Shown here in pieces: positions 1,454-52,727 of a stretch of 64,000 nt of DNA; within the stretch, counting starts at the first letter, position 1, and every line of letters starts with the position of its first letter. Position numbers and translations under genes: made by a program. Origin of the DNA: Takakia lepidozioides. Taxonomy: Eukaryota; Plantae; Bryophyta. The stretch lies in assembly GCA_030704615.1 (NCBI GenBank), contig CM060731.1, positions 75,330,001 to 75,394,000 on the forward strand, written 5' to 3'. The notes beneath the pieces were generated by a model that saw nothing but the letters and a program-made list of their open reading frames with translations, ran no database searches and was not told the DNA's origin.

Positions 1454-2273
1454 ACCGCGACTTGTGTGCCAGTAGCCAGCTGGTCCTCGTCCAATAAAGG
1501 AATCTATAACCGATGTTTGAAGCATGTTGCCTACGTGGCAGAATTTAACTTGTCCTGGACAGGCCTGTCACCCACCGTAGCCCACCACCACCTGGGCCAC
1601 ACAGCCCTGTTGTGCTGTTTATTTGTTTTTTGGAACGAGACTTTGGTTAATTGGAATTTATTTATTGGACTGTATTATATTATAGAATATGAATATCTTA
1701 ACCCTTAAGTTCCCAAGCCCTTTCTTGACTTTTTACCAATTTTGGGTACCCAGCTGCAGTAAATTGCCCCTAGAAACCTACCAAAAATCATCCACAGATT
1801 CCAGCCTTATAGCAATGTGCCCAGCTCATTTATGCATGACATACCAAAAAATGAGCCAAGTCCACCTCGGAAATTGTGAGATTATAGCGTTGGCCCGTAC
1901 CTCAAATATCAGGTCCCAAATAAAAAGTGAGAAAGAAATTGGTTTGACCAAATCAAAACCTAGCTTTATCCAATTTTGCTTGCCCCAAGACCCACCATTT
2001 CCAAATCAATAGTGGAGTGGCCATGACCCCACTAAATTGCAGGTCCAACTGATTTTTTCACCTATGGTTGCTATTCATGCAATCACATAGGGGTTGAAAT
2101 CTCAAAATTGACAACAGAAAATGTGCCTCCAAATGAAGTACTTTTTTTTCTGCAAATTTTTTAAAAGCCAATGGTGGATGTGTGTATGTAATGCTCACAC
2201 ACCACAAGGTGAAGTATTTTTTTCCAAAATTGCTAATTTTCTGCCAAAAATGGCCTTTGGAGTGCAATCTGTT

Positions 2274-2675
2274 GCCTCTCATTTTAAGATAATAGGGTCT
2301 TCAATGGGCACGTGCGATGTGGCCGGTGGGCCCCGCGCACGGACGCCCGGCTCCCCAGCACCTCGCCCAGCCGCGGGCGCGGCCGCAGCAACCGCGCTTG
2401 CGCCCCCGTCCGCCGCGCGGCCAGTCCCCCGCCCATGAGTCCGCTGCCCTCCAGTCTGCCAGTCCGCTGTTGGCCAGTCGGCTGCCCAGCAGTCTGCCAG
2501 TCCGCCAGTCCGCCTGCCAATCCGGTGCTGGCCAGTCCGGTGCCCAGCAGTCTGTCAGTCCGCCAGTCTCCCCGCCAGTCCGCTGGCCAGTCCCCTGCCA
2601 TCCAGTCCACTGACGGCGCAGGATCGCCACCGTCCATTCCCATAACCCATCCGAGCCCTCCATTTTTAGGGCTGC
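2274..2675 (+). repeat. Left TIR of the MULE
   Basis: Reverse complement of 14404-14787 with small indels; contains CAGTCC/CAGTCT sub-repeats. Confidence 0.95.
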
Positions 2676-2819
2676 AATTCAAACCTGCATCCCTGCCGCC
2701 TGCCACTTGCCAGCAGCCGCGAACGTGCGCACTGTTCCCCTGGCACGTTGTCGATCGTGTCCTGTACTGCGGCGCGTTTCTTGCATGTTCTGAAGCGTGT
2801 CCTTTGTACTGTATAGGGC

Positions 2820-5800
2820 ATGGACATGGAAGCAAAACCCGATGATATACTGATCATGGAAAGCCCGCTTATACGGCCTCTTCGACAATGTTTGCAAACA
2901 GCAAAACCAGGACCCTTCAACAGGAAGGATCTCCATTGGAAGAGTGAGACGCAATATGGGTTTATGGGTGTGCGAGTGAATGTTGAAAAAGCCTGCATAC
3001 CTTGGGATAGAGTTGGTGACTTCGTCCTGGGAGAGGAGAGTTTGGAGGACTACCCCACTCAGTTTTGGGTGAATATCCATTCTAAAGTGGAACCCGGCTC
3101 GCGAAAAACACCCAGAGCCAACACATTTCTGTCCAGTATTATGTGTGCACCATCCTCAGTCCTTTTGACGTTTCATTGCATGTCTGTTGCCATTTTTTGT
3201 TTCACGAGTTCTCTGATTTTATGCTTCCTCAAGTCGTTGGATATCGATTTTAGAATTTTCTGTCCAAGTATCAATGCTGCTACGGTCCTGATGACAAGCG
3301 CACCAACAAGGCAATAGTGGAGGATCCAAAATAGAAGCGTGGAAGACCTCTTGTGGGTGCTGGAACATCTTGCCCTCATAAAGGCCCAAGAAGAAAGAAG
3401 TCGGAGTATGGAGAGTCTTACAAACGTGGTTGCCGATGTTGTTTCAAGGTCCAGCAATGCTATCTCGCCCCTGACATCTGTGTCCTCACGTACTACAACA
3501 ACATGGAGCATACAGATGCGCAAGGGAAACCCTCGCATGGGAAGTCCGCAGAGTTCAGGAACACCCGCCACGCCTATGCACCACACATTAGCGAGGAATT
3601 GAAAGCCTGGGTCGTCGAGTGTTTGTGCCAAGGCCTGTCGGTCGCCCAAATCATGATGGAGCATAAAGAGCACGTGATGAACAACACCGGCTTGGGCGAT
3701 GCATGGACCCGCGATGATTTCTTGTTGGAGCAAGATGTTCGCAACCTTGCCGAGAAACGTGCGTGGCAAACCTTCAAAAAACACGCCGATGATGTAGAGA
3801 GTGTGCGCATGTGGAGAGACCAGAATCATGCGTCCGTTTTTTTCTATCAAGAGAAGAAATTAGAGCCAACATTCGAGCATTTTGATGGAGATTTAACATT
3901 CACTATTGGCCTACAGACTCCGTGGCAGAAACGACGAATGTTGGAACTAGGACATGATCGTATCGTTGCATGTGGTGCAACCTTTGGGACAAATCATGAC
4001 AAGGTACTATTCGAACGATTCCATGGACTTGTACAAGCATGATAGCATAGTACCATGCAACATTCACATAAAATTTGGTGTGCTGACCCTTTCTGTATGT
4101 TTTCATGTGTACGTTGCGGAAGACCGAGGGGCAGACCCATTGTGAACCGCTGCAGACCTCATCACTATTATGAAGTCTTCTCGTGCAGAACTGAGCGAAA
4201 TTTGCATGCTCTGACCATCTTACATTGTGCATTCCAACAGTTCCCATTGTACACGTTGATGGTCTTCGACGAGTGGTTGAACGGTATACCAGTTGCCTAT
4301 ATCCTATCCGCGAGGAATCGGATAAGAGACCTGGTTCCGTGGATGAGAGCCTTGCGCGATTCACTCCTCGCAGATTTGCCAAGCTAGCAACCCAATGCCT
4401 TCATTGTGGACGATGCCGAAGCAGAAATCAACGCTATTCGGTAAGTCTGTTGGTCCACAACACCGGTCCATTGTCGAGGTCCACTGCAGCAGTCCATTGC
4501 TACAGTCCACTGGCAGACTCCTGTGGCAAAACCCGATGGCAGTTCGTTGGGCAAATCCACTGGTAGTCCGCTGTCAAGTCTGCTCATCAGTCCCCTGGCA
4601 AGTCCGCTGGCAGTCCCCGACAATCCGCTGCCAAGTCCGCTGCCAAGTCCACTCAGCAGTCCCTGGGGTCGGCCGTCCCCTGCCAAGTCCATTCGGCAGT
4701 CCCTGGCAAGTCCGCTGTGGCAGTCCGCTGATGCAGTCTGCTGCCCCAGTCCTAGCTAGGGGAAGTCCAATGGGGAAGTCCATTGGGTAGTCCAATGGGG
4801 TTATTCCAGTACATCAACGTCATGGCATTGTACTGTCCACTGGGCGAGTCTAGTGGCTCTGCCCGCTGATTCAGGTCGCTGTTACAGTCCACTCCGGCAG
4901 TCCACCATTGCAGTCCGATCCTAAGACTCTAATGTGTACCATGTGTGTTGTGCATAATTGTTTTTGAAGGAGTACTCATTTTCCTCTGCCTTTGGCATGT
5001 CCGCAAGACATGGGTGAAGCAATCATGCAAGAAAACGAAGGATCCGGTGACCGCTGTAAACTTGTTGAAGGATACGAGAGACCTCATGTACTGTAGAGGG
5101 GGACCATGCAACGAGAAAAGAGCGCTTCGGTGGGTGGCAAGGAGAATCCGTCGTATGAGGTCAAAATACCTGAAAGGACATGAATTTCTTGACTATATCG
5201 AACACTACTGGAAGCCCAAAATAGTAATGTGGTGTACAGCAGCCCGCCATGTCCCTCATGCGAGCCAAGACACAAACGCAAGCATTGAGGCATACCATGG
5301 AAATCTGAAGGCAAGATTTGCCATGGGGAAAGGCAAGATGAGTGGTCGTAGAGTGGACTGGCTTATATGGGAACTCACTGGCCGTGTGCTAACACACTAC
5401 TGGTACGCAATCCATTTGAAGACCCACGGGTTCATAAGAAATGACAAACACGAAAAGTACATATCCAGTTCTATACTTGCGGCACGAGACATTCCTGCTG
5501 AGAGTGTTACTCTTCCCTTGGGTCCTGGTGAACCAGCCTACGTTCTCAGCAGCAACCACCCCGGCACAACATACATTGTTTACAATCCTGATTGCGATTG
5601 GGGTTGTTGCACGTGCCCATGGGCAATGAAGGGAAACTTATGCAAGCATCAGGTCCGTGTCCTGAAGATGCTTCACCTTGACCTGCATGATGGCCTCCTT
5701 GTGCGCGCTTGTGGCACGACGCTGGGAACCATTCATGGAAGATTACCTAATTTGCTCTTGGGCAATGGTGCCGGCCGCAACGACGAATCCAATCAGTTCA

Positions 5801-6216
5801 TGGAAAAACATCCTCCGGATGACTTCCCCTACGACGAGGCACCTCTGGAGGTCTCAGCCTCAATGGAACAAGAATTCGCGGACATACTTCGCATTGTAGG
5901 TGATGACAAATACCTGGAGGCACATGCCCGATCTGCTCTTCATATGTGCAGAGGGCAGCTCGTTGATATCCTGGCGAAAAGTGCGGTTGGAATGTTGCAT
6001 CCTGCGGCAGCGAAGGCTTTCCGTCCTCTGAACGACAACAACAACATGTCTCTGAAAAGGAGACGAGATTTCGTGGAGGCCTGGAAAACCCAGCCTAGGG
6101 TTTTGCGGAGAACCAGCAAGAGGGTGTCTGCACCTGCACCTGCACCTGCAACACATATATACTCGAAAATTCGCAAGGTTTTAGGTCGTGTAGATGTCAC
6201 GAAGAAGACAATATAA
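2820..6216 (+). pseudogene. MULE transposase with C-terminal SWIM zinc finger, multi-exon and disabled
   Basis: Approximate exons 2820-3142, 3269-4003, 4241-4440, ~4956-6216. Motifs YQCCYGPDD, KRGCRCCFKV, FFYQE, IGLQTPWQ, FPLYTLMVFD, FIVDDA, LCLWHVRKTW, TNASIEAYH and SWIM CTCPWAMKGNLCKH. In-frame TAG at 3332 and 4385; the expected first catalytic Asp position reads G (VACGATFG). Confidence 0.9.
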
Positions 6217-6360
6217 GTCTGCAATGCCTCGAAAAGAGACAAGGTTTCACGTCGTGTAGGTGTCACGGAGAAGACAATATAAGTCTGCAATTCCTCGAAA
6301 AGAGACAATGTTTCACGTCGTGTAGGTGTCACGAAGAAGACAATATAAGTCGGCAATTCC
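6185..6360. repeat. 66-bp tandem repeat (~2.7 copies) overlapping the transposase stop codon
   Basis: GTCGTGTAG...GAAGACAATATAAGTC starts at 6185, 6251 and 6317. Confidence 0.9.
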
Positions 6361-6989
6361 TCTGGTAGCATTGTCCCTTTCTGAAATACAAGTCCGCAAT
6401 GGACTAATGCACAGTCTTCCAACGGACTCCTCCAGTCTCCCAACTGACTCCCACACAGTCTCCCAAGCATAGTCTCCCAACGGACTCACGCAGTCTCCCA
6501 ACAGAGTCACAGTCAACAGACTGCGAGCGCCAGTAAGTCAGTCTGCTGCCCACTCCAAAGGTCTGTTCACCACACTTCCACCTCATCCCTGCAACTCTTC
6601 CAGCAGACTGCTGGACAGACTAAGTCTCAAGCAGACTCATCCACAACAGCAGACTCAAAATGGACAGGCTCCAGTGGACTACCTCCTTAACGACTCATGC
6701 CAATCCAGCATCCCAGCGGACTCATGGACATGGTGCCTACCAGACTAGGTACCAGACCCACCAGTCCTAGCCTCGGCAGCGTACTGCTCGCACATTCAAG
6801 CTCAGCAGACTCGGGTGCATAGTGCATGGAAAAATTGACACCATTGTGTCCATTGAGTTTAGTGACAACATTACAAAATATGCCAGCACCCACAGTACAC
6901 AAAAGTGCTCATCACCACTGGAATAGTAAGCGAAAAGACTCGCAATTTTTATTTCGGTACGTAGACTTCACAGGACAAGTACATCATAC

Positions 6990-9900
6990 TCATGAGAGCA
7001 GTTCGATATATTGGGCACACTGCATTCGCTGCCCAAGTGCAAACTTGAAAGTAAACCAGTCCTTCGTGAAAGGTGTTCCTCTCTCTGGCTTTGTAGTCTT
7101 GGAGACATTTGCTCTGACTTTTACCCACTCATAAAACACTTGAATGAATGACATGACGTAAAAGCCACACTCCCAGCTGATTGGTTGTTGGGGCACATCA
7201 GACGCATGGAACTGAAATACTTAGACAATCTCATGCCACTCTGGTGAGTCCATCGAGTACCCTAAGCACTCAGCATGAAGCTTCCGAATCCACCCTAGAA
7301 CAAAGGGACATTTATGCGAGTCCCTGATAGAGTTCAGGTGAGTGTAACAGCCCTAGCGGAGGTCGATGATACAAACACTCCAGTGCCCCCTGCAATGGTA
7401 TCAAACAACATGGCGTCATTGCACAATCATGATGGGCAGACTCAGCAGACTGACACTCAACAGACTCAGCACTCAGCAGACTCAATCTTCAAACCCAGTC
7501 CACTACACAAATACAGAGGTCAACTTAATCGCTCAGAGTCAAGACGACACTGCGAAACCAGACTATGACTCATGAGACAGTCTCAGCAGACTCGGAAGAG
7601 TTCTTACTCGTCCCCAATTGGCACCAAAATGAAATCGCACTCTTTCAAGTCCTTGCCCAGTTGTTCAGTGCTGAGGCAACCTTTCAAGACCTCCAAAAGG
7701 CTTTCATGTTGCCCCACCCCCAATGACTTCAACACCGTCCACATTGACGTTGGAAGAACAGCAATAGTGTTGGTGAATGCAACCTCAACCGACTTCTCAT
7801 AGAATCGACACCACAGCTCTAGGAGTCTATCTGTGCACTCCGACTCAACCTTCTGGAGCGCCTTTATGTCATCCGGCGATAGTCCGCATTCAAACCGTGG
7901 GTCCCCTTAAAAAAACATCAGCATGGAATTACCCGCCTTCACGTGCAGAGCATGTGCTTTGCCAAACCGAGCACCCATCCTGCACAGAGCGGACCATCCT
8001 TCGGGAAGCCTCATGTACTGAACAGACTGACGTCAACATGGTACCAAACACTCTACAGGCTGAACAATTCATCAGACTGACAAAACTAACCACAACAGAC
8101 AATGATGAAACAAGCAGCAGACTGACCATAATAGAGCACAAAGCACTTAACGACAAAGACAGACGAGGAGACTGAGCACAGTACTCACCTGTGTTGCTCC
8201 AAGAAACGACCCACATCTTTGTCCATGTCCAAGGCCAGCTTGCGGTTCTTGTTCATAAAGACGCCAGACTTTTTCTTCGCCGGTCTCTTGGTACTCGGAC
8301 CCTCCTCGACCTCCTCAGCATGGTCCACAACAGTCCGCTTCTTGGCTTTGTCTCTCCCCTGGGAAGCAGGGACAGCTGTAGACGGACTGGATAGAGCAGA
8401 CAAACGCAGCGCTGCCACCCTACTTCGCAACAGAGGCTGGTCAGCAGGTTTGTTTACACTTGCTGGACCTGTCTTTGCAGCTTCGTGGGTCGCATGCGTA
8501 GAACTGACCCACGCATCGGGGGGCGTGCTCACTCCCACACCTTTCTTGGTTGTCGATCCCACGTTTGCAGCATGGGCGGAAGATGTCATGTCCTCAGAAG
8601 TAGACAGTCTGCCGACGGAGGGACGAACATCTTGTGAGGATACCAAGCAAAATGACGAATTAGCCCCATTTCACAATGTGCTAAAACATAAACAACAGTC
8701 CTGAAAGAGGAAATGACACAACCTGCCCAAGGGGTGAGGGAGCAGACTCCATGTAATCCAGCGCTATACCAGACGGTGTCTGCGCTGCATGTGGTTCCTT
8801 GTCAGTGTGCCTACCAGCATGTTCAGTCTGTTGCTCAATGTGGGCAGTCTGCTCGGCCGCCGGTTCTTCGTCAGTCCTTTCGTCTGTGAACTGTGCAGTC
8901 TGCTGGCAACTCTGCGGTTCAGTCTCTTCCTCAATGTGGGCAATGTGCTTGGTGGCAGGTTGGTCGTCAATTCTTCCCTCTGTGAAGTGTGCAGTGTGTT
9001 GGTCAGGCCGTGCAGTCTGAACTGTGCAGTCTGCCGCTCCGAGCCATCCTGGTCAGTCCTTCCATCTGTGACCTGTGCAGTCTACTGGTTAGTCTGCGGT
9101 TCAGTCTGCTCATCAATGAAGTATGCTGTCCCGTCACAGGTTGCTCGGCAGTCCTTCCATGTATCCACTGTTCAGTGTGCTGGTCAGTCTGGTGGACAGC
9201 CGGCTGGGTGTTCGGATCTCCATGGACTTGGGAAACATCAAGAACATGTATGGAAGACCCACCGGCAATTGCTTCCTCAGACTCTTTTGTAAGATCTATG
9301 ATACGGTTTTGCGTTCCCAGATTGAGTTCGGTCATCACGTAAGACTCATCTATGGCTTTCGCTTTCGCCACTGAGCGCACGAAAACGAGACTAAGCTGGA
9401 AGGTCATAGAAGGCAGGCCACGGGGAGCAGGATAAGAATGCTTTACCGGTGACCTAATGACGTCGTCAGTGAATGTGCCTGGGGGAAAAGTGGACTCGGT
9501 CAAAACACTCATACTGGCAGATCCAAAAACATGTTGTTGGGAACTCAGCAGAAATTTGTCCACAAGGTCCCGGTGAGGCCAGTGCATCCGAGTCTGTTGC
9601 ACAATCCAGGGAACAGACTGGCTGTTAGTCTCCTGGATAGTCTGCTCGGCCATCTGCTGAGTGGGTTCGTCAGTGTGCTGCAAAGTCTGTTGAGGGGCAA
9701 TCTGCTGGCTGGATTCGTCGATCTGCTGCACGGTCTGCTGTACAGTCTGCTGAGGGGCAGTCTGGTGGCCATGTTCGCTGGTCTGCTGCACAGTCGGCTG
9801 AGGGGTAGTCTATTGGCCGGTCTGTTCTCCGGTCAGCTGCAAAGTCTGCAAAGTTCGTTGCCCGCTCAGTACTGTTTGCACATATTGAGTATGTGTGTGC

Positions 9901-12656
9901 GGGGCAGTCTGCTGGGAGTGATCCGGCCTATTACCCGGGACGGTCTGGTGCACATGCTCGGTCTCCATGACTTGGGCAGTCTGCCCACATGTGTCGTGGG
10001 GAATATGTTGTTCGACATTCTTGTGGCCAGTCTGCTGGACAGTCTCCCAAACTCCTTGTAAAGCCAGGACAATGTCCCTTGCACCTCTGGCAAAATAGTC
10101 AAAAGCTACCTGCACTTGCTTGTCTCCCAGATCAACTCGCCCTGCAACACATGTTTATACAAATGTGAACTTGTAAAAAAGTTGGCAAAAGAAATTGAGC
10201 TGAAACACGAAAGTTGCCCATAACATTTTACCTTCCAAGAGATTTTCGACGAGGCCAATGTCCTTGATTTGCCGGCACAGGCATGCTCCATCGAGATGAG
10301 CAATGGCGCCGATGCGGTCTTCAGTTGGGATCCCACACCACAGGACTTTGAAGACATTGGGATTCTGCAAAACAATGTCGAATACTGCTCGCTCCATCAC
10401 CAATGCAAACCAGTGTAATGCGTCATCCACCACAAACTTCTGTGAATGGTCTGTTCCATGGAGTAAGTCCATCCTCAAACTATGCAGATCCTTCATCAAC
10501 TTGTTGTATGAGCGGAATTGCCAAATTGCATCCATCTGTGTTGTAGGAAGGAAGCTGCCATGCGCTCAAAGTCCTCCTCAGTCAATCCGAACAAGTGCTT
10601 TCTTCGCACCCCAAAGGTTGGATGTGCCATAGGCATATGTCTGAGGTCTTCAGGCCGTGGGTCATCCATGAGAATCAGCTGCACAAGTAGAGGCGGCGCA
10701 TTTTGGTCGCTTGTGGCTTCAATGGCAACAGCAGAGGCGGCTTCTAGAACATGGTTGGCTTCCTCAATAGAAAACTCCATGGAATAATAAAAGGGTACAA
10801 ATGACCACCGGCGGTCCGCAACAATCCGGTGGAGCTCATTATGCCAATCCAAATATGGATTAATTTCTCCCACCCTAAGCCGGGGAAGTGTGAGGTCTTC
10901 AGCTCCGGGTCGAATTACCGGTGATGGCGATCGCCAAACTGCAAAAAGCGCCGTGCTATGTGAGAGAAAGACAGTCTGTTGGTCAGTCTGCTGGTCCGCA
11001 GTCTGTTGGATGACAGGACTTCCCATTGGCATGGGCTGCATGATGGGCTCTTGGAGAGGAGTCTGCAGGATGACAGGCTGCTCGTTGGGAGTCTGCTCCG
11101 TTGGAGTCTGTTGGATGACAGGCTGCTGAACGGGAGTCTGCTGGATGACGGCCTGCTGAATGGGAGTCTGCTGGATGGCAGACTTGGCTGTCCCAAACGC
11201 ATTCCCCCCCGACGCGTCTTGAATATGTAATGTCGCTATAGCAGCAGATGACCCAGGATACTTCAATAATATGTACTCTCGCACGCGGTCCACTTCCGCA
11301 CGCACTGCGGTCGCTTGTAAATGAGCATCATTGCTAGGTATCCGCCAAGCCTGAATGGCCCTACGAATATAAACACGTTCATCCTGGTACACGGCAGAGA
11401 ACTTGGACGTCAGGAACATGGACGTGGACTCTATATTCACCTCATGCAGCGGACTGGACTCATAGACCAGCAGACTGTAACGTGCGTATGTAGGGTGGAG
11501 GCAACTAGTAGACTATACCAGCGGACTGACAAACGGACTCAGTAATTAATGCAGCGATATAAAACAGACTAACTGACGAGCGGAGTGAGCCAGCGGACTG
11601 AGGAGAGAACGCAACGGACTGACCAGACTGAATAGGCAACGTGACCACCCGATGATGGACTCAAACAGCACAGAGAACAGACTGGGCGGTCAGACTGACC
11701 ATTTCCTTTACTTCATCATCGCCATCTTCATCTTCAAAGCTGTTCAACCAATTATGTTCCGCCTGTCGGATGAATGTGCGTAGCAGACCTGACTGGGCAA
11801 CTCTGTAGAAATAACGGAAGAAGTCTGGATCCCCAATTGGTGGGCACTCAGGTGGGAAAAACCCAACGTCAACGAGGCGCAATGTGCTAGGGCAGACTGG
11901 CCCTTCAGTGCTCTGTTGAGTTTTTGGTTTTGACCCTAAACCGATGGCATGGGTTGCGATATTTGTGTGAGTTTGCTGCCGAGTCTAGTCAGGCAAGTCA
12001 ATGTCCACTGGACTTGTCACCCCTTCCAGGCCCTGAGCAGATTCACTTTCAGTATCAGTACTGATGGTGTGGGTCTGCCGCCCAGGACGGGGTTCAGTCT
12101 GTTGCGTGGATTTTGCCCTTGCCTCGCGAGCAGACCTTGCAGCCTTCTCCTTTTTTTGCCTCTCATTTTGGGCCCCATCTCTCAGTTTACGTTTTCTGGG
12201 AGCGTCCGGCGTTCCCTGCACTTGCAAATCCTCCATTGACGGGCCACCACAATGGACGCCATACCGTGCACGCACTTCGTCTAATTCCAAAGTGCGGGGG
12301 TCAAGCACTGATCCGCGCAAGCGCATTGTGGCCTCTTTGACAATCGACATTTCTTTCAGTATCGGCCAAGGCTTGAAATCCCGTGGAATCATTGCAACAG
12401 TCTCCTTGCAACCCGTGTCAACACAATGCCGATTTAGTTGGATTTTGTCCTTGATAACTTCTTCACAGAAGGGACAGAAGAGCTTGTCCTTCTGCCAATT
12501 CGAGTTTTTGGGCTTCCGGGCGCGGAGGTCTACAAATGCTTCCACTATTTGATCAAACTCGTCAGGTGAGTACCAGTACCTTCGCTCTTTCTTCAGTCTG
12601 GTTTGGTGCACAAAATCCACCCAGTCCGCTCCACCATTTTCACAAGCATCCTCCAT
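6990..12656 (-). pseudogene. Large MULE cargo gene: N-terminal Cys/His cluster, Q/T-rich repeats, C-terminal Ulp1/C48-like cysteine protease; disabled
   Basis: Chain of minus-strand ORFs 12656>11700, 11440>10190, ~10115>8770, 8646>8190, ~8018>7606, ~7390>6990. Protease motifs DFILVPIG, GHWSVCIID, HLNS, PQQPISWECGFYV. Stops at ~11985, ~7907, ~7353, ~7221 and a frameshift near 10540. That all parts form one gene is inferred. Confidence 0.75.
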
Positions 12657-14403
12657 CGCTGCAGAATGAAACGAAGGTGCAAGGACAATGAGCGACAAAT
12701 AGAAGTCCTATGAAAAGACTCACCCTAAGCAAGAAGATGACACAGAATGGAATGGAAACACTGCAGCAAGTGAGAACCTCACCGAGCCGATGAACTTCGA
12801 GTTGTTACGAAGGCGAGCGTGTTTGCGACGCTTCGCGGCTCACCGCGACTCTCCACACCTGGGGAAGAATGGTCGTCTTTCGTTACAGTGATGGAAACGC
12901 AAAGAGGAAAACAAAACAGTGCAAAACAGTGCGAAGAAACAGGCGCGAAGAGAATGGAGTCGATCGCATATGGAACATGAGAAGAAAGTAGAAGTAGAAG
13001 GGGGAAAGCGGGCATGGCATTGCCAACGTGCCGCGATTTCACAGGCGCCAACTATCCGCCGTCATCGCATTGAATATGTCCACCGAACGAACGCATCGTA
13101 CTAAATTCATCCACGGTCCTCGCAAGTGCAGCAGACTCATTTCTCATCGGGCCGAGAATCCACCGGACCGCCAGTCCAGCGGACTATTCGCTTTGCTGAG
13201 GCGAAGCGGCTTCATATAGGAGGCACTTCCCTGCCAGCGGATGAAGACAAAAAAGAGTAAGGGGAGAACAGGAAAGTCGAACACACCCATTGCGAACAGA
13301 CTCGCGGCACAACAGACTGATGCATGCACAGTGCAACAGACTGATATCCATAGAGGAGAACTGTCCAGCAGACGGACGTTTCGGCAGACTGGCGGGAGAA
13401 CAAGCCAAAAAACCGGAGGAAAAATAAGAAGTCAAATAGACTTAGTGCAACAGACTTCCGACACAACAGACTGACAAATTCACAAATGCGACAGACTGAT
13501 ATCCCAACAGACGGACTTCCAGCAGACCGCCTCCAAACTGACTGTTATGCACGCGATAAGGGGAATATCCGGAGCATTGATGGGCCAGCGGATCCACTGT
13601 GAACAGACTCGCGACACAACGGACCTCAAACATCCACGCGCATTTGCAGATGCAATTGTCTCAGCCTGGTCCGTCTCCTGGCAAATGCGACAATGTACCG
13701 ATTCTGCACCTACTCTCGTCGTGGCTCAGACATCTGCATTCAGCAGGTGCGTGTGGATGTTTGAGGACCTTATGACTGGATGGTGTTTCTTGACGACTCG
13801 AATTGCTTTTTTGTGCTGCCATCCCTTATATAATACCATGTGGATCCATCACAAAGCTGGGTTTCTTCAAATTCTCCACCCTTTTCCACAACTTATGCAC
13901 GACGGATGCAAGCCGTTATACTTAGTCACATAAATAGTCCCATCGTCCGATACGAAATCTGCAATACACGCCCCCATGTGCATACGCTTCCACCATTTTC
14001 GCGCCCATGTTACCCATGGGTTCTTTTAACGAACTAAACTTGTGAAGGCTCTCATGAGGAATGCAGTATGAAGGGGCTAAATGTATCATGACGGATCACA
14101 AGCAAATGACGTTATCGACGACAGATGTCCGCATTTTCTATATTTATGACTTGGTACAAACCATAAAATGAAGGTTCCCGAAAGCACAACAAGAAGACAA
14201 AAATAGTGGAAGCATATGCACGATGGTGGCTGTAGTGCCCAGAGAGTCTTCTCATGTTCAAGCACACGTTTCATCATCATCATGAATATTGCGCGCAAAA
14301 GAGGAACAGTCGCGTGCATGGAAACGCCTACTGCAACATCGGACAACAAACAGCCGTCAAAAGATAGCGGCCGGGATTTGGTGGGAAGATCATTGCCATT
14401 TTC

Positions 14404-14787
14404 GCAGCCCTAAAAATGGAGGGCTCGGATGGGTTATGGGAATGGACGGTGGCGATCCTACGCCGTCAGCGGACTGGATGGCAGGGGACTGGCCAGCGGA
14501 CTGGCGGACAGACTAGCGGACTGGCAGACTGCTGGGCACCGGACTGGCCAGCACCGGACTGGCGGGCAGACTGGCGGACTGGCAGACTGGAGGGCAGCGG
14601 ACTCATGGGCGGGGGACTGGCCGCGCGGCGGACGGGGGCGCGGGCACGGTTGTTGTAGCCGCGCCCGCGGCTGGGCGACCGCGCGCAACGGCGGGCGGGG
14701 TGCTGGGAAGCCGGGCGTCTGTGCGCGGGGCCCACCGGCCACATCGCACGTGCCCATTGAAGACCCTATTATCTTAAAATGAGAGGC
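14404..14787 (-). repeat. Right TIR of the MULE
   Basis: Reverse complement of 2274-2675. Confidence 0.95.
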
Positions 14788-15239
14788 CAATCTGTTTTGG
14801 GTTTGTTTACCTGCCACGTCAGCGGTCAACAGCCCTTTTCAGGCCCCAAAACGTAAATGAGAGATCTAAGATATTTTTTGTAAGTCGCAGATTTTGTTTT
14901 TTTTTTTTTTTTTCCATCATACTCGAGACAAATCCCTTGTCATTAAAGCTTCAGGAGTAGGCCCCATCAGATTCGATCTGCAAAAATTTGGTCGAACTGC
15001 AAATTCAAAGTGACCCGATTCAGGTCGCTTGGGAACTTAAGGGTTAAAGTCTCTTATCAATATCCAATTTGTTATAACTTAAAATCTTTCCTAGCAAATA
15101 AAATAAGAAAAACAACTAGGAATGATGTAAGAACGTATGAACTTAATGCATGCGTGCAATGTGGGCTCTCCCGGGCCCCTTTGTCAAATCCTCCTCTTAC
15201 CCAAAATTTGCTATTAATAAATACTTTAGAATATTTATT

Positions 15240-16774: not shown

Positions 16775-17500
16775 CCCCTAAACGTCTCTTTTTGGACTTT
16801 TGTTCAAAAAAGGTACATACCCTAACACAATTGGGTAAGTTGCAGGAAACAGTCATCCAAGTGGATGAACTGTACAGCAAGAAAGTTAAGGTCATCATGC
16901 AGGTGGTCAAAAATTTGCAGCTGATTTCACCGTCTCAATCAAAAGATCATAGAAAATGAAAATGGTGAATTTTTCAAATCCACCCAAAAATCCAGCTGCA
17001 TATCAGGGTTGACCAACTGTTTGCTCTATGATTTAATTTTTTTTCCTGCCAAAGCACCACCACAAAGTCATTGCCTACCATGTAGAAAACCTACTCTCCA
17101 AATTTGGAACCCAAATTCCATGTTTCTGGGTGGGTCCCTTTGTATGTGAAAAGTAGTGGGTACAAAACCCAAATTTCACCGGATGCATGCCAAAATGCAA
17201 TGGGGGATTGAATTTCAAAGTGAAATGGAATTTACAACGGTCAATCTGTAGCATGGAAGCATTGAAAGCCACTTGAAAAAAACCTTGATGCAAATATAAA
17301 AAACTCCACCTAGGATGGAATATATAGTGAAATTCCAACTCAAGCTAAATTTCCAACCACTGGGAAAAGAAGCCGCAGTGGCCCCCGCCACGTATGCTGG
17401 TCAACCCCCATGGAAGTAATCCCGGCACGACCCCTTGCATGCGGATTTTTGTATCCGACAGTGCATTTACTCAATGAAAGACCGCTACCATCTTAATTGA
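16775..17500. mobile_element. piggyBac-like non-autonomous element, copy 2 (right end lost)
   Basis: TTAA (16771-16774) + CCCCTAA. Colinear similarity with 51812-52500 (TTTTTGG..CAAAA..ACATACCCT..CAGGAAAC..CATCCA..GGATGAAC..AAAATTT..CAGCT.ATT.CACCG..TTGACCA..TTTGTATG). Confidence 0.75.
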
Positions 17501-18039
17501 CCAAAGAAGCAATCACAATTTATTATATCAAAGCTTTGCAATCAAGTGCAACTTGTAGTATAAAGAGGTTAGGACTAGTACCATGGTCTGGAACGGCGTG
17601 AGAAAGGACGTCATCTCGGGGATGCAATGGTTGGCAGCCATGGACGTTCGGGTGGCATGCCGTGATTGCTCTTTGAAGGGGGTGTTACCTGGTGATAAGC
17701 CTTTCAAGCTCAGAGGTACAAGAGCCCTACCCAATGTACTTTTGTTGTCTACTCTTTAAACGAAAAGATGCATACAAAAGACAGCTGACTAGCTGTTATT
17801 CGTAAGCATTCATGAGAATGGGAACAAAGATACTGAAATTGGGTGGGGGATGTTAAAGCGTGAGCCTGTGAGTCCATGAGCCTGACCACCGAGGAAGACA
17901 GACCTATAACTGCGGAAATAGGCCCTACATATGGAAGGACAACACAATTGAAATAGAGAATAGAACCCAAACTGCAACATTGAATAATGTAAAATTACAG
18001 GCGTTGAGACGATCCTAACCAAAAAAAATAAAAAATGTA

Positions 18040-18740: not shown

Positions 18741-19847
18741 ATTTTTTATTTTTTAAATTTATTAAAATCCATGTTATTGGAACTTGGGAGAGCCGTTCTA
18801 ACCGGACTTGCTATTATTTTCCATTTTATGATATATTGAAACAGTTTGAATTTCACATTATTAATTCATGCAAACTAGAACTCCTCACAATTTGTATGGA
18901 CGTAGCGTCGTTGAAAGTGGGTTAAGTCTTAACAGATATAACAAAGTTTTATTTGAATTTGCAGATATCTTTCTTAGTGCTCTGCTTGGACTATCTCCTG
19001 ATAGTGATGTAGATCATGCCATGAGTTGGTTTCTGAAGCAGTCCCTGTCTGTAAGATTCTTTGTAGGCATTCTCTATTAGAGAATGAAGAGTTAGAGAGA
19101 CAATTGAGTGATTTGCTACTGAAAGGTTATAGCGAGTCTCCTTGGGGAGCATCGATTTTGTTCAAGAAAAAGAAAGATAGGACTTTAAGATTATGTGTGG
19201 ACTACAGCTGGCTAAATAAGCTAACTGTAAAGAACAAGTTTCCACTTCATACGATAAAATGATTTATTTAATTATTTGCATGGTGCGCAAGTTTTTCTAA
19301 AGATAGACATGCAAAGTGGAGACCATCAAATCTGTGTCAAAGATCCGGACACATTCAAGACGGCTTTCAGAACTAGATTTGGCTATTATGAATTTACAAT
19401 GATGCCTTTTGGGCTCACAAATGCACCGGCCACTTATGTGTTTGATGAATACCTTGTTCTAGAAAATAACTGGGGAAATTCGTGTTGGTCTTCATAGATG
19501 ATATCTTGATCTATTCAAGGACATTTTGAGAAGTGTTCTAGAAATCTTAAGAGATAATATACTCTATGCTAAGAAAAGCAAGTGCAAGTTTCTTGTTTCC
19601 CAAATTGAATATTTGTTTTACATATTGTCGAAAGATGACATTTTAGTTGATCCCCAGAAAACAAATATTGTGGCTGAATGGCCAATTCTGAAGCATAGAA
19701 CAAATGTGAGAGCCGCGTTCTTGCAAGGACTAGAGAACTTTTATAGAAGATTTATAAAAATATTTTCCAAGATTGCAGCCCCTCTCACTAGCATGCCGAA
19801 AGGCTTAGGAGCAATCACATGGAATGTGAAAGCTTTGAAAAGCTTAA

Positions 19848-20677
19848 CCCTTAAACGACCACGCGACCTGAATCGGGTCGCGTGGTTTTAGAAATTAACG
19901 TCGTAATTGATGTGGATGAAGTTAGATGAACATGCATTCTGAATGAAAAAATTTAAGCGCCCTTGTCTTGTACCTGCTCCAACAAATGCCACAGGAAAAC
20001 CATAAATATCCTGCACGGTACGATTTTTTAAGTGTCAGGGGGTACCAGATTTGGGTGATGTCTAAGCACGTTGACCACTTACGTAGCAGCCTAGGGGGTG
20101 TCCACGCACCTTGGCAGGCTGGAAGGTGTTTAAAAAAATATCCCATCCAACCTAGAAATTTGCTCTTTATCATATTGATTTTTATAGTGTACTTTATATT
20201 GGGGCAAAGCATAGACTGACCGTAAGAATTTGGATTCCAAGAAAAAATTCTAGACATTTTTAGGAGCCTTGGTTCACTACAGCAAATTGGGGAAATTTAC
20301 CCCCCAAAATTCACATACAAAGCAGCCCATTGATTTTTTTGGAATTTGGGTCTCACTTTTTGAGGGGGCACTTGGTATGTGCCACATATGGTGGACATTC
20401 TCGAGGGAACATTCAACCCGATACAACAAATGTCTGGTCAAACCAAAGTTACCCCTTCTTTTGGAGAGTGAATTTGTAAAATTCATGTTTGCTATAATCT
20501 GCAAATTACAATAGTCAAATGGGCTGAAACTTTATGAGTAGATGGATGTGGTAGTTACATAGGGATTTATAAGGTTCAAATCCGTGGATGATTGAAGGTA
20601 AGGAGTTACACCCTCATCCATGAGGGTGTGTACCATTTTGGGGGTGGCCCACCAAAACTTAGCTAGTAGGTTAAGGG
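19848..20677. mobile_element. Non-autonomous piggyBac-like element, copy 3 (830 bp, reverse orientation)
   Basis: TTAA (19844-19847) CCCTTAAACGAC ... GTAGGTTAAGGG TTAA (20678-20681), with palindrome GCGACCTGAATCGGGTCGC. Removing it and one TTAA restores the Gypsy frame FEKLKDVSTRALVLKLLDY. Confidence 0.9.
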
Positions 20678-20750
20678 TTAAAGACGTGTCAACACGTGCT
20701 CTTGTCTTGAAATTGTTGGATTATAAGATATGTGGCCTAGTACTTTGCAC

Positions 20751-27218: not shown

Positions 27219-32981
<5,763 letters not shown>

Positions 32982-33129
32982 GAGACTCAGATGGCAGGTG
33001 TCCACCGGTTATTGGCTAATGGTAGCCGAACCCCTATGTTGGCACTTCAGTGAAAGTTGCCAGAGGAGCAGAATTTTGTGGTAGAGAGTGCATGTGTGAC
33101 TCTGAATGTCAACAAGTTACATTTAGTGC

Positions 33130-33367
33130 AGTGGTAAGAGCGTAAATGTTTGATGTCATAAAGGTGGCCACCTTCTCACGGGAAGGCAGTACCCCTTGGG
33201 GGGTTAAAGCGACACCATAATTTTGCTTGCTTGGGCGTTGTTATAAGATAATGTCGTTACAGCCTCCATGGCACCCCCTTCAGAGGTTATTTTTTCCTCT
33301 TTGTACTCCTTGGATTGGTTTTGTCCACCTTATTTATAAAGTTCCCTCCCTTTTTCCTAAAAAAAAT
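33130..33367 (+). mobile_element. L1/SINE-like 3' tail with poly(A)
   Basis: Hairpin module at 33166-33215, then TTTGTACTCC...TTTATAAAG...CCT and an A-run at ~33359-33367. Confidence 0.55.
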
Positions 33368-33499
33368 GAAGAAAGATAATGTCAGTGCGATGAGTCTAAA
33401 TTCTGATACAGCCTGAGAAGGAAATGGCTAAAGCAGGACTACCTGCTATGGATTGCAAATTCAAAGGTTTGAAATCAAACTAATCCGAGGCTGCAACCT

Positions 33500-34145
33500 T
33501 GTTAGAAATATGCATTCGGTGTTTCAATCTACATCTTTTTCCCACCCCTGCTTAAATCCAAACAAGAAAGAAAGCCAATTTGACAAGTCTTCCCAGTTCC
33601 AATGGCAAATATGCCACGAATAGTCAAATCATAGAAAATGATAAGGCTAGAGAAGAAATTGTCATAGGAAACAATGTGCCCCTTCCCCTCAAATCCTTCC
33701 ATCAATCTTGTTATCATTCTATACTATATACCTTATACTATGCAACTATCTATGTCATCTTCTCTACCTCCATTTTTTGCACGTATTTAAAGGTGTAATT
33801 GGCCAAACACCAAAATTATATGCCCCATTTCACCGGCTTCTTAGCTGCCAAGTATTGCTGTAACATATAGTGTTTATTTTTGGGTTTCACCATCATTTCA
33901 TCAACACTTAGATTTTGCTTTGACATGTAGTACCGCGCGAATATAAGGTTTTTGCTAGCTTGTCAAAGGCAGGGTCAATGCTATCTGTGCAAACCATCCA
34001 TGTCCACAAGGTGCAGGCACTGCAAGATTCAAAACGGTTACATATGGCTCAAAATGTGCATGATTGAAGAGCATTTTTAAGAATATTTCATCGTTTGTTG
34101 TCCAATAGCATCTGGAAGTAGAACTTTTTTAATTCCCATCAGAAT
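33500..34145 (-). pseudogene. piggyBac (PGBD, DDE_Tnp_1_7-type) transposase relic
   Basis: Manual translation: ILMGIKK...; LSVDEMMVKPKNKHYMLQQYLAAKKPVKWGI*FWCLAN; GKGHIVSYDNFFSSLIIFYDLTIRGIFAIGT. These match the piggyBac first-Asp (VDE), KPxKWG and DNxF/GT motifs. Confidence 0.85.
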
Positions 34146-34189
34146 ATGAATGCCCAACCAAGCCCTCGATTCATGCAAAGACAAAAAGT

Positions 34190-34650
34190 ACCATCACTTA
34201 TTTCCCTTGGAGATTGTAAAGATAAAAAAATGTTGGATCACATAGTTGATTACCTGAACAAGGTATTTGAGATAATAGCAAGGGCATCAAATTGTTGTGT
34301 TGGGATGCATATCATACGGAATCGTGAGCAAAAGATGATCTTCATTCATTAGACCCGGTTTATTTTGTTGAAGTATATTGATCTTGATACAACCCACACT
34401 ACTGCTACAACGATGGATTCAAATTTAGATGCTCGTCTTGACAACGAAGAGCTGGATTTTCCATATATTCCAAAATTGTATGGAATATTATGTTTGCAAT
34501 AAAGAGTCGTCCTGATATTGCATTTGTCATAGGAACAATTGCAAAATTATGCACCAAGCCGAAGCAAGTACATTGCAATGTTGTAAGAAGGATTATGAAA
34601 TATTTGCAAGGCACAATGTCTCATTTCAAGCTATGCTATGCTGCTAGACA
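34190..34650 (+). mobile_element. Ty1/Copia RT fragment
   Basis: YLNKVFEI...VGMHIIRN; SRPDIAFVIGTIAKLCTKPKQVHCNVVRRIMKYLQGT. Confidence 0.8.
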
Positions 34651-34859
34651 TAAAGAGAGCCTACGCAAATCTTGAGGTCGCAGGAGCTAATCTAAATCGA
34701 TGACATGAAGTCATGACAACTATAATTTAAATTATTTACTGATATTATTAAAAAAAATACTATCCATCAACTACTTAAAAGCATAATAGTAGAAATGGAG
34801 ATGGTAATGAACGGTAGGATAAACAACTATGAAATTGTAAATAAACTTTAGTGTAATCG

Positions 34860-35370: not shown

Positions 35371-37399
35371 TCTCACATGGCAACACCCTGACCTCCGCGT
35401 CCTTGGCCATGTTGAGCTTGCCCTTGGCCTGCACCTCGTGCCTGGCCACCTCGTCCTCTCTGGGCTGCTCCACCTCGCCCCCGGCCACCATTGTTCCCTT
35501 GGAACTGGCCTAGGCGCAACTTAGGATGCAAACCATAACACTGGGTCTCTCCATGCCCGTGCTTGCCACAATGCCCACACTGCAACTGTGCAAGCTGTGC
35601 ATGTGCCGACCTTTTGCCTCCCTCTGGGCAATTTTTCTTGACATGGGGTCCTCCACATGTCCAACACACCACCTTCGCCCGTCGTTGGCCTGCAAATGAA
35701 GGGAGAGACCCCTGCATCTGAGGTCCTCTCTGTCCTTCCCTGAGCTGTCTCTTTAGCAAATCCCACCATGACCACTCGTTCCTCCACCATGTTGAGCTCT
35801 ATCCACTCTGCCAGCAAAAACACATTTGCTAAGGTAGGTTGGGCCACTTGTAGGAGAGTTGCATCCCGCACCTTTCTCCTCAGCTCCTTGTCCAATATCC
35901 CATACCAGAATTGGACTGCCTGAGCTTCCGTAACCTCTTGGGTTACATTTATCAAGCGCCTCATGCGAGTGAAATCCTCCCTCAAGCTCTTAGTAGGCTT
36001 CCGTTGGAACTCTTGCAAGCTCCGCAACTTCTCTATCCTCACCCCTTGGTAGTTCCCTCTCAACTCTTCGAAGAACTCCACAACAGGGTTGAGGCAGAGA
36101 TGAAGAATGTTGGGATGAGGGCATGCTGAGGTTAGGCATTTTTTTAGCTTCTCTTCCTTATAGTTTTCCACCCTCGCATTAGGCCAAGACCTTCCCGTAG
36201 GTGGAGGCAAGAGTCAGTCGGGGTTTGGGCTGGGGTGTCCTTACATGAGCAACACCGTGGAGTTGTTTTTGGTGTGGGGGAGTTGTCGTTCTGATTTTTT
36301 GTGTTTGGATCCCCTCCATACCCGCATGCTTGACTGTGCGTCATGTTAGTTTTGTGTGGGCGCTTGTTTTTATAGGTGATTGGTCCAGATTTGATCACCG
36401 GTCAGTCCTAGAGCATGCCGTCGATGGTGAGGCTGGGGTGATGACCAGTCAAACCATCATTGTTTCTCCTGTGGTGAGGTTGGAGGTGATGACCAGCCAA
36501 CCATATGAGTGCTTGCGGTGGATGCAGGTGCAGGTGTAGGCTATGTTAGGAACCTAGTATTCCAAACCATAAACCGCAACAGGTTCTCTACCCGGTTACC
36601 TTGTGGAGAGGGGGTTAGGGACATGTTCATGACTGGTTGAGTGACAGTTTGTCAACACGGAGGTGCCACTAGTTGCTGGGGAGAGTGCCGGTTCGAGCAC
36701 TAGCAATACTAGTGGATACACGAGACGAGGTGTGCTTAGGTCACCTTCACCTCATGTGTCTTCTACGGAAGGTGCTGATTTGGATTGTGAATCAGGAGGA
36801 CTCACACCGGCGGTGCAAGTTGTTTCCTTGCCATTGTTGTGGGACACAATGGAGGAGATGTGTGGAGCTACCAAGGAGCCACGAAGATACTCTGGGACGG
36901 TGGGCACCATCGAATTGGATGATTTTATCCAAGAGTTTGATAGTTAGTGTGATTTGCAGCAAATGCGCAATCCACAACTATTTACGCCTTTCATGGCATG
37001 GAATGGGCTGTTTCAGAGGGACCGCCTATGGATGATTACCATGACTTCAGGCGGGGGCAAGAAGTTGAGATCGATGAGTGGAGGATGTACTGGTCACCCG
37101 ACTATGTCTCCATCACTATGGGCACTAGAGCCACGAGGGCAGTGGCTACACCTGCCGCTGCACCGGCAGCTTCAACAATCAGTAGTGGGACTAGTGGGAC
37201 TGGTGGCACCCAAGCCACTACTGCACCAGCACCAGTGCCCGTCTCTCTTCCCTCACTTGTATGACCATGGGAATATCATGAAGATACTCCTCAAACCGCC
37301 TTCCACGAGCTTCGAAATTTGGCTTTCAAGACCACATGCCAGTACTCAGGCAGTCCACAAGTGCCTCCACGAGTCAACACAGGCCGTCCACAGGTCAAC

Positions 37400-38110
37400 A
37401 CGGGCCACCATAGACCAGCACAGGCCCACACACATCATTGGTCACAGCCGTCACAGCCCCACACAGGCCACAGCCCCACAGCCCATCACAGCCCCACAGG
37501 CCACAGATCACAGCCCATCACAGCCCCAAAGCCCACAAGGCACAGCCCATCACAGCCTATCACCGCCTGTCACAATCCATTACAGCCAGGTCACAGCCTG
37601 TCACAGCCTGTCACAGCCCCAAAGGCCACATGGCACAGCCCATCACAGCCTGTCACAGTCCGTCATAGCCCCAAAGGCCACAGGGCACAGCCTGTCACAG
37701 CCCCAAAGGCCACGGGTCACAGCCTGTCACAACCCGCCACAGTCTGTCACAGTCCGTCACAGCCCCTCACAGCCCCTCACAGCCCCAAAGGCCACATGGC
37801 ACAGCCCATCACAGCCTATCACAGTCCGTCACAGCCCCACAGGCCACAGGTCACAGCCCATCACAACCCCAAAGGCCACAGGGCACAGCCTGTCACAGCC
37901 CTACACAGGTCACAGGGTCACAGCCCCACTGGCCACAACCTGTTATAGCCCATCACAGCCCCGTGGGTCACAGCCTATCACAGCCCCAAAGGCCACAGGT
38001 CACAGCCCGTCACAGCCCCAAAGGCCATAGGGCACAGCTTGTCACAGCCCTACACAGGTCACAGGGTCACAGCCCACAGCCTGTCACAGCCCGTCACAGC
38101 CCCATCCATG
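37400..38110. repeat. Minisatellite of (GT)CACAGCC(C) units
   Basis: Dozens of CACAGCC/GTCACAG repeats; they explain the long spurious ORFs at 36954-38030. Confidence 0.95.

Positions 38111-41781: not shown

Positions 41782-41785
<4 letters not shown>

Positions 41786-41814
<29 letters not shown>
41786..41814. repeat. (GA)n microsatellite
   Basis: Direct reading; a shorter copy lies at 42389-42400. Confidence 0.95.
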
Positions 41815-41816
<2 letters not shown>

Positions 41817-44902: not shown

Positions 44903-50247
<5,345 letters not shown>

Positions 50248-50915
50248 GAGACTCAGATATGAAAGATAAAGGGAGTAGGTATTTAATTTGTAAAGAAGGG
50301 GATGTTGGGTGGCAATTCGAGTCACTCCAGGCAGGTGTCCACCGGTTATATTGTCTATTGGTAGCCAAAACCGTAGCTCAAGTTGGTAGCCTGAAAGTAT
50401 TTCAGTCAAAATTGCCAGAGGAGCAAAGCTTTGCTGTATAGTTAGCCCAGTGGTAACGGCATCAACAGCTTCACCAGTTGTAGTGGGTTCAAACCAGTGT
50501 TGTGCGGATCCTGCCTTTTTAAGGAACCCGCTGAGTCCGGGTTCGGGTTTTTTTTTTCGAGCCCAGTCCGTGTCTAGATGTGTTTTTGAAATTTGGAAAA
50601 TTTGGGTCCGGGTTTGTAAACATAGACTCGGGTTAGGGTCTGGGTAGTTGTTTGGAAATATTAGAGAGTTCACGAGTTTGGATCCGGATCCTAATTAATT
50701 CATTAAATAAAATAGAAAAATAAGTTTAATGAAGGATAAATTTATTTTTGGCTGGAAAAAAATTTAAATCTTAATAATGAATTTTATTTTAAGAGATATT
50801 TCTTCAAAATAATATCATGAATATGTATCGTTCATTTAACACAACAATTAAAATAAAAGTTTAAGTTCCATTTTCCATTCTTCAATATCAAGTTACGGGG
50901 CAAAGCCCCTTTTTC

Positions 50916-52727
50916 GAGTGTTGAGCGGTTCTCTAGTTTTGGATAGAACTTGCAAGGTAGATTCTATCTTGTGGAAAGTAAATAGAGAACCTCCGGGGCA
51001 AATACGAAAAAACATGGACAGTTAGAGAACCTGCGATGTAGGGTATGTCTCCAAGTTTCATTGTCACGGGTATGTTTTATACTGGTTCTTTAATGCAATT
51101 ATCCGCCAAATCTAGTGCTCGGGTATATGGGTAGAGAACTGTATAGAGAACCGAGAGATGACCCGGTTCCGGGTCCCGGTTCTGAGTTCAAAAGTTATTA
51201 TGGACAGAATAAATAAAAAATGTGCATGTATGAGATGGCCACAATTGTCAATAATTAAGCTCATTTTCTAGCACAACTAACACTAAGATTGCACTGCTGG
51301 CAGGTTGGCATTCAGTTCTAGCATTTTCACTACCCTTCTAGGCTTCCATACTAACCTTAGACAACCTTAGATAAACGCCCTTATACCCAGGGTATGTGTC
51401 GGGTGCAGCTACCCTTACCCTCCCCTCTCATTCCAACTTGTAGGTCAGGTTCTTATGGATACTATCGCACTTTGTGCTTTCCAGCCGTGTAAGCCTTTTC
51501 TAGTTGTCGAATATGTTGCATCTCTACGACCCGCGAGTACCTTACTTCGGCTGAACCTTATAAGGAGCCTATTTATGACTGACTCAGGCAGGGTTGGGTC
51601 TGTCTTCTGAAATCCAATTAGTCTCTGTTATACCTACCAGAAGAACCGATTACGGACCAAGTCGTTACCCGTTGGCTTGGCGAATGCTGTCGTTCAGTAG
51701 CTCTAGCTATTAGAGAACCCCCGGTTCGGTGAAGTTCACGGGTAAATAGATTTTGGTATCCGCCGGTTCAATCTTCACTAGGGTATTTGAAATTTTAATA
51801 CCCGAGGTTAACCCCTAATGGGACGAGGCAATTTTTGGTGGGCCCCTCCAAAACAGGACATACCCTCACGGATGAGGGTATATCTCTCAGGAAACTAACA
51901 TCCACAGGGATGAACCGTATGAATGGGAGGTTACCTACTTCATCCAGCTTCTGTGAAAATTTCAGCTCATTCCACCGTGTCGTTTAGAAGATTATAAGAA
52001 ATTAGCCCAAAATTTGGGGTACACTCCAAATTTAGAGTGGAAAAATGGTTTGACCAGGAAATTGGATCGACAAAATATTTTTTCCTCGCAAGATCCCATC
52101 CAAATTCCAATTATGTGACACCTAAAGCATGTTGCCCCAAAATTTCAAAGTAGAATTCTAAAATCTTGATAAGGTTGCTTTGTATGGAAAAACAGGGGGG
52201 TCAAAAATACACCATGAAGCTCAAATGACATGTAATTCAGGCTTAGGGGGTCGAAATTTCCTTGGAATCACAATTGTTGTAGTGAAAGTGTTCCTTGAAT
52301 GATGAACTACTACCTCCGAAAAGAAATTCAAAATTCTAATAAAAATTCAGGCAGAGATTTGCATTTGTTTCCATTTGTACTTTTGTCTTGTTGTAACCCC
52401 TTCAACCTGCCACATCACTAAGTCAAACCTGCTAGACGACCAATTTTGGGCACCCTTGCACACTAAAAACATTTACCGAAGACAGGGCTTTCATTATTTT
52501 AGGATGCCATAAAGATGGGCAGGTGCATGACATCAAGGTGCACAACTTTCGTTCAGAAAGTTTTTTCATCCAAGGTCATCCAACGATTTGCCATCGTGGA
52601 TGATTTCTGACGTGACCCTGACACGACCCGAAACGGGTCGCCTCGTCCATTAGGGGTTAAGGGGGCATATACCCAGGTCCGGAACCGGCGGTTCTTTCAC
52701 CCAAAACCAGAGAACCGCCCAACACTG
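50916..52727. mobile_element. Non-autonomous hAT-like element (middle)
   Basis: TIR GAGTGTTGAGCGGTTCTCTAGTTTTGG / CCAAAACCAGAGAACCGCCCAACACTG; 8-bp TSD CCTTTTTC (50908-50915, 52728-52735). Confidence 0.9.
51812..52656. mobile_element. Non-autonomous piggyBac-like element, copy 4 (845 bp)
   Basis: TTAA (51808-51811) CCCCTAATGGGACGAGGC ... GCCTCGTCCATTAGGGG TTAA (52657-52660); subterminal palindrome CGACCCGAAACGGGTCG. Confidence 0.92.

Follow-up and report, generated by a model that had tools for sequence, protein, structure and literature searches.

A probable family of short non-autonomous piggyBac elements flanked by TTAA in the nuclear genome of the moss Takakia lepidozioides

The stretch of DNA analyzed here, called the window, spans 64 kb of contig CM060731.1 in the Takakia lepidozioides assembly GCA_030704615.1 and holds four short elements (E1 to E4), a 12.5-kb MULE nested in E1, a Gypsy pol frame interrupted by E2, and a decayed piggyBac transposase relic in which stops and frameshifts have accumulated (Table 1). 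A GH1 beta-glucosidase gene of plant-like type, with twelve exons, is also present. E1, E2, and E3 are complete and E4 is truncated, and the pattern TTAA/CCCYTAA...TTARGGG/TTAA holds at all seven recognizable ends. The initial annotation had described three complete elements of about 0.8 kb bounded by TTAA/CCC...GGG/TTAA and a fourth starting at position 16775 with one end left; every end listed for the former was read directly, and end B and the left TTAA of E4 were found, its end A being lost at about 17500-17522 and its right TTAA absent. Once the MULE and one copy of its TSD are subtracted, E1 measures 819 bp. The terminus comes in two variants, with CCCTTAA shared by E1 and E2 and CCCCTAA by E3 and E4, and E2 lies in reverse orientation with respect to the other three copies. 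The TIRs of E1 match at 17 of 17 nt; those of E3 extend over about 17 nt and include one indel, and those of E2 cover 7-8 nt. With 819-845 bp, the elements leave no room for a transposase; they are non-coding, amplified, and provided with TIRs and a TSD as expected of MITEs, although their size is borderline for a class that is small and usually below 0.8 kb.

Table 1. Positions in the window of the four elements, of the MULE inserted in E1, and of the transposase relic
Feature	Positions	Strand	Basis
E1, left TTAA target-site duplication (TSD)	1698..1701	.	direct reading
E1, left part, end B, 17-nt TIR CCCTTAAGTTCCCAAGC	1702..2273	+	nhmmer 1782-2198, E = 1e-9
MULE nested in E1, not a family member	2274..14787	.	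9-bp TSD CAATCTGTT at 2265-2273 and 14788-14796
E1, right part, end A with GCGACC...GGGTC hairpin	14797..15043	+	direct reading, nhmmer
E1, right TTAA TSD	15044..15047	.	direct reading
E4, left TTAA	16771..16774	.	direct reading
E4, truncated, end B kept, end A missing	16775..~17500	+	nhmmer, hmm 3-784 of 853
E2, left TTAA TSD	19844..19847	.	direct reading and contigs
E2, complete, 830 bp, inside Gypsy pol	19848..20677	-	direct reading and contigs
E2, right TTAA TSD	20678..20681	.	re-entry of the empty-site contig at 20678
Decayed piggyBac transposase relic with stops and frameshifts and no recognizable ends	33420..34220	-	PF13843 profile, tblastn
E3, left TTAA TSD	51808..51811	.	direct reading
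E3, complete, 845 bp	51812..52656	+	direct reading, nhmmer
E3, right TTAA TSD	52657..52660	.	direct reading

The specificity of these ends was examined at the scale of the window. The exact motif TTAACCCYWAA occurs eight times with zero mismatch and seven of these matches are element ends; the eighth, at position 32282 in an intron of the GH1 gene, is a chance match. Likewise, TTAACC/GGTTAA pairs with a TIR match of at least 12 of 20 number only three, which are E1, E2, and E3. The pair formed by TTAACCCCAAA at 32282 and GGGTTAA at 33202 was considered as the ends of a fifth element, or of a 'Pack' element carrying a gene, and rejected: it falls inside the GH1 gene (intron and last exon) and its TIRs mismatch. 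The sequence TTAACCCCTAT at 53950 was also discarded as an element end, as it has no partner end. The two extremities of an element differ from each other. End A, which corresponds to the left end of E2 and to the right ends of E1 and E3, carries from about 16 nt inward the palindrome GCGACC-N5-YGGGTCG, and end B carries about 50 nt inward the palindrome ACCCTCA-N4-TGAGGGT, of which the flanking pair reads CAC...GTG in E2 and TAC...GTA in E3, both sides having changed.

The initial annotation had interpreted E2 as an insertion splitting a Gypsy pol frame at a duplicated TTAA and had proposed to search paralogs for sites that have one TTAA and lack the element. Both points are now borne out. 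The pol frame (ESFEKLKDVSTRALVL...) is continuous across the junction once E2 and one TTAA are removed, and taking out E2 plus 4 bp restores the pol motif ...ESFEKLKDVSTRALVLKLLDY. Contigs were available from four runs on a single sample of this organism, from which the assembly was probably built; they inform on paralogs and not on population polymorphism. Among them, a paralogous Gypsy contig follows the window to position 19823, continues with 30 diverged nt ending in GAAAAGC, and re-enters at 20678 as TTAAAGACG; it displays a single TTAA and no element, at a depth of about 9-10 times single-copy. This paralogous site was probably never occupied. No paralogous Gypsy empty site was found inside the window by tblastn, and direct reading of the complete copies revealed no duplication longer than 4 bp beyond the ends. 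TTAA is a true 4-bp target duplication.

The same contigs inform on the abundance of the family. In 11-15 other contigs per run, the match to the window starts exactly at the TTAA, with its first T at position 19844, and the sequence before this point consists of unrelated flanks agreeing at only 0.41-0.43, which shows that there are many further E2-like copies, each preceded by TTAA. Depth over E2 and E4 reaches about 5-25 times single copy, and a shorter E2 derivative that skips positions 19873-20553 is also present.

How closely the four copies are related was assessed by semi-global alignment against shuffles, which gave z = 84 for E2-E3, 36 for E3-E4, 23 for E2-E4, and 14 for E1-E2, and by an nhmmer profile for which E2, E3, and E4 alone served as input. 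This profile matches both halves of E1 in order and on one strand, namely 1782-2198 (profile 81-492, E = 1e-9) and 14809-15043 (profile 610-853, E = 7.5e-4), and nothing in the window beyond the four copies. Because the profile joins the two halves of E1 colinearly, E1-E4 are, on sequence comparison, one family with deeply diverged members. Pairwise identity between copies amounts to about 50-70%, and blastn recovered no more than the E2-E3 similarity, a weak one between E3 and E4, and the hairpin; the profile search was required for E1. Each copy exhibits its own TIR variant at both ends, which argues for separate subfamilies rather than for the random decay of a single one; together with the identity level, these copy-specific TIRs support the existence of distinct subfamilies. 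The initial view of colinear but diverged copies falling into several subfamilies is thus in agreement with the alignments, the profile search, and the TIRs.

The only transposase relic of the window belongs to PF13843. Two pieces of it match this profile colinearly (profile positions 117-156 and 194-234), and tblastn with proteins of its clade covers residues ~21-311 at 27-50% identity. A 64-aa piece of the relic searched against 1.8 billion representatives recovered mostly fragments, at 58% identity at most, and no close full-length relative. No autonomous element with TIRs matching those of E1-E4 was seen in the window or retrieved from this genome. The nearest public relatives of the relic were retrieved with their surrounding DNA from environmental eukaryotic contigs, and three of them, designated L005, L016/L018, and L020, are complete TTAA-flanked elements with ends CCCCTAAA. 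The first is a 5.6-kb element with TTAA on both sides and TIRs CCCCTAAAGTTCTrAGG that encodes the protein P0057; the second, of 5704 bp, has the terminus CCCCTAAAG and contains, after a 302-aa ORF, the coding sequence of the 534-aa protein P0079; the third, of 5845 bp, has the terminus CCCCTAAAATTC and contains a 382-aa ORF ahead of the one for the 485-aa protein P0076, and a second insertion locus of this element was recovered on L023. P0057, P0079, and P0076 possess near-full PF13843 domains (E = 1e-61 to 5e-73), the upstream ORFs of 302 and 382 aa have no Pfam match, and an ESM Atlas look-up of P0079 confirmed the piggyBac family. A first metagenome scan with P0057 gave no confirmed locus. 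One of the public contigs also bears a kinase that, among solved structures, comes closest to the Raf-like kinases of Arabidopsis.

The ends of these public elements can be set beside those of the window. CCCCTAA, CCCCTTAA, and CCCTTAA ends lie behind transposase genes at L002, L012/13/15, and L027, and the CCCTTAA and CCCCTAA of the MITEs are the terminus variants seen in the nearest piggyBac clade of the relic. The more distant piggyBacs L006-L009 have CCCTTTC termini, and a query with a four-sequence alignment returned 10 loci, most of which are distant piggyBacs that end differently (CCCTTTC...). The 5' end of L020 has the palindrome CGCGACC-N7-GGTCG, the offset of which equals that of the MITE hairpin, and L016 has a different palindrome, GGCCA-N5-TGGCC, at the position of the end-A hairpin; end B can be aligned, if loosely, to the 3' extremities of the public autonomous elements. 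Beyond the 7-nt terminus, similarity to the public autonomous ends is weak (a few pairs with z of about 3-4 and a mean of about 0.6-1.0 against shuffles), and we accordingly take these elements as relatives that establish the class and not as the partner of E1-E4. A MITE profile searched against all fetched loci gave no credible match (best E = 0.015), so that in these loci the MITE family was not found outside the organism of the window.

Taken together, the sequence features make it very probable that E1-E4 are non-autonomous, MITE-like, non-coding members of the piggyBac superfamily, 0.82-0.85 kb in size and residing in a plant nuclear genome. They combine a 4-bp TTAA TSD with 5'-CCY...RGG-3' termini and short TIRs. 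Since a TTAA duplication is common to piggyBac and Kolobok, non-autonomous Kolobok elements would leave the same target site; the termini separate the two superfamilies, those of Kolobok being 5'-RR...YY-3' in explicit contrast to piggyBac (PMC9587614). All seven ends are 5'-CCC...GGG-3', the sole transposase relic of the window is PF13843, and the public elements with CCCCTAA or CCCTTAA termini encode PF13843, which renders a Kolobok origin extremely unlikely. The initial annotation had regarded TTAA together with CC(C) termini as the signature of piggyBac, and the CC...GG ends and the PF13843 relic uphold this view.

One should also consider that most plant MITEs derive from Tc1/mariner (Stowaway) and PIF/Harbinger (Tourist). 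Stowaway-type (TA) or Tourist-type (TWA) elements with a strong preference for TTAA contexts would produce filled and empty sites that are formally identical to ours, as the duplication can be counted as TA, TTA, or TTAA by assigning one or two bases to the element. TIRs are symmetric under the TTAA model only, though, and the full TTAA is present at all seven ends and at more than 10 further copies per run. Moreover, the termini resemble neither the Stowaway (CTCCCTCC...) nor the Tourist (GGSC...) consensus, and autonomous elements with these termini encode PF13843; we judge such an origin very unlikely. The case of an unrelated or unclassified family of TTAA-targeting DNA transposons, whose ends would have converged on those of piggyBac, draws on the fact that the partner transposase is not tied directly to E1-E4. 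Against convergence, the 7-nt terminus reproduces both variants of the nearest piggyBac clade, and L020 has a similar GCGACC-type hairpin at an equal offset. Large elements of other superfamilies lying between TTAA/CCC ends would more simply be explained by nested insertion, on the model of the MULE in E1. We therefore see convergence as very improbable and retain a piggyBac affiliation for E1-E4.

By analogy with known piggyBac systems, we infer that the elements were mobilized in trans: a piggyBac transposase (PF13843, DDD) would act on an element by recognizing its CCCYTAA termini together with its asymmetric subterminal palindromes; once excised, the element would be inserted at a TTAA, which would be duplicated in the process. 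As to relative age, E1 predates its MULE and E2 postdates its Gypsy host. The copies of the window are presumably old and by now immobile, since their identity is low, one of them is broken by the MULE, and another is truncated.

The initial annotation had further claimed that piggyBac is not a usual component of land-plant genomes. In the plant piggyBac literature compared here, which includes Bouallègue et al., a 2017 paper gives piggyBac as undocumented in plants, and a survey published in 2025, which screened 1007 plant genomes for PiggyBac domains, reported recently active clusters that span only seven other superfamilies. The claim has to be softened with respect to transposases, as one 2025 mining paper, the sole report of its kind found, records piggyBac transposases in land plants, with a 'group 4' made of fungi, land plants, and algae (PMC13461360). 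The relic and the L005, L016, and L020 elements may plausibly belong to this group. That work mined transposases, and its consulted passages describe neither non-autonomous plant elements nor their ends. No description of plant piggyBac MITEs was found in the searchable full-text literature, from which most subscription journals and Repbase are absent, so that this result does not amount to proof of absence.

The family is of interest because land plants have yielded hardly any records of piggyBac transposons. Amplified non-autonomous elements structured into subfamilies would imply repeated rounds of piggyBac transposition in the germ line of a plant. From a methodological standpoint, plant MITE pipelines limited to TA, TWA, 8-bp, and 9-bp duplications would miss or misfile such elements. 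piggyBac is the main footprint-free transposon tool, and to our knowledge its use in plants has been confined to the insect element; the defined cis-ends of the present family (terminus and two palindromes) could be paired with plant-resident transposases. A bolder proposal, which we regard as possible but rather doubtful, is that the plant lineage hosts an endogenous and perhaps still active piggyBac system in which autonomous two-gene elements and several MITE subfamilies have co-diversified in their termini and end-specific hairpins. Were it true, this system would supply footprint-free TTAA transposition of native plant origin, as well as a case for testing old vertical residence versus transfer from fungi or algae.

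Comparison with known systems places the present elements as follows. Kolobok shares the TTAA duplication and differs, apart from its termini, in transposase fold and signature. Like E1-E3, the piggyBac element of Trichoplusia ni targets TTAA, has CCC at its terminus, and possesses asymmetric terminal and subterminal repeats (PMC5381638). It differs from them in being autonomous, with a length of 2.5 kb and a 594-aa transposase, and the sequences of its 13-bp TIR and 19-bp sub-TIR are unrelated to those of E1-E4. piggyBac MITEs are well known in animals, for instance human MER85/MER75, bat npiggy, the TxpB-derived elements of Xenopus, and those of corals and lepidopterans. Like them, E1-E4 are non-coding and combine the TTAA duplication, CC(C/Y)...GG termini, and short TIRs, the animal elements being amplified in trans by PF13843 transposases. 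The animal MITEs measure a few hundred bp, whereas E1-E3 stand at the upper size limit of MITEs. Unlike those of animals, the present elements reside in a land plant, their terminus is CCCYTAA instead of CCCTAGA or CCCTTT, and the ends of E1-E3 carry two different subterminal palindromes.

In contigs assembled from all four runs, which are read sets from one sample of the same organism, position 19873 is joined to position 20553 with 30 other nucleotides between them, and this junction points to a shorter, internally deleted derivative of the subfamily of E2, the complete 830-bp MITE copy within the Gypsy pol, elsewhere in the genome. E1, the 819-bp copy of the same piggyBac-type family, is split by a nested MULE (see table) whose TIRs begin GCCTCTCATTTTAAG and whose TSD is perfect and reads CAATCTGTT.

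Coordinates of the features in the window and in the public contigs
Sequence	Position	Strand	Feature	Remark
Window	2274-14787		MULE, 12.5 kb	nested in E1; ~27-nt TIRs, 9-bp TSD
Window	27300-33000	+	GH1 beta-glucosidase gene	multi-exon; exons apparently open
Window	34490-34675	+	Copia-type pol fragment, short	reads …RPDIAFVIGTIAKL…
Window	35373-36210	-	Gypsy gag	
Window	36954-38030	+	ORF, 358 aa	repeat units ...SPSQPQRP / HSPSQPITA...
L016	5082-5990		second ORF, 302 aa	in autonomous piggyBac
L020	4837-5985		second ORF, 382 aa	in autonomous piggyBac
L027	135, 5750, 12701, 12765		four TTAA|CCCCTAA ends	ENA contig, 1.07 Mb
L028	4251-5015		TTAA-flanked element, 757 bp, CCCTTTC... ends	ENA eukaryotic contig, 0.93 Mb

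Among the public contigs fetched for piggyBac relatives, L027 carries a split piggyBac transposase with the four ends placed around it within 13 kb, an arrangement that hints at piggyBac elements, nested or adjacent, in a further eukaryote. The element in L028 has the appearance of a piggyBac-type MITE from a different lineage. In the autonomous piggyBacs of L016 and L020, the second ORF ends 10-15 bp ahead of the transposase ORF, and a Pfam search of both second ORFs returned no match.

The best match of the 64-aa piece of the decayed transposase in the window (33420-34220, minus strand) is P0001, a predicted protein of 1977 aa in which 13 separate stretches align with the query; its gene model may have been fused across repeated piggyBac relics. 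The Copia-type fragment is positioned between the relic of the window and the Gypsy gag, so that the relic sits within a patchwork of TE debris. It is worth noting that the relic lies immediately 3' of the GH1 beta-glucosidase gene, on the opposite strand; this gene encodes ITENG at ~32014 and DNFEW at ~32853, with a further exon peptide at ~30196. The 358-aa repeat ORF adjoins the Gypsy gag and is overlapped by similar ORFs.
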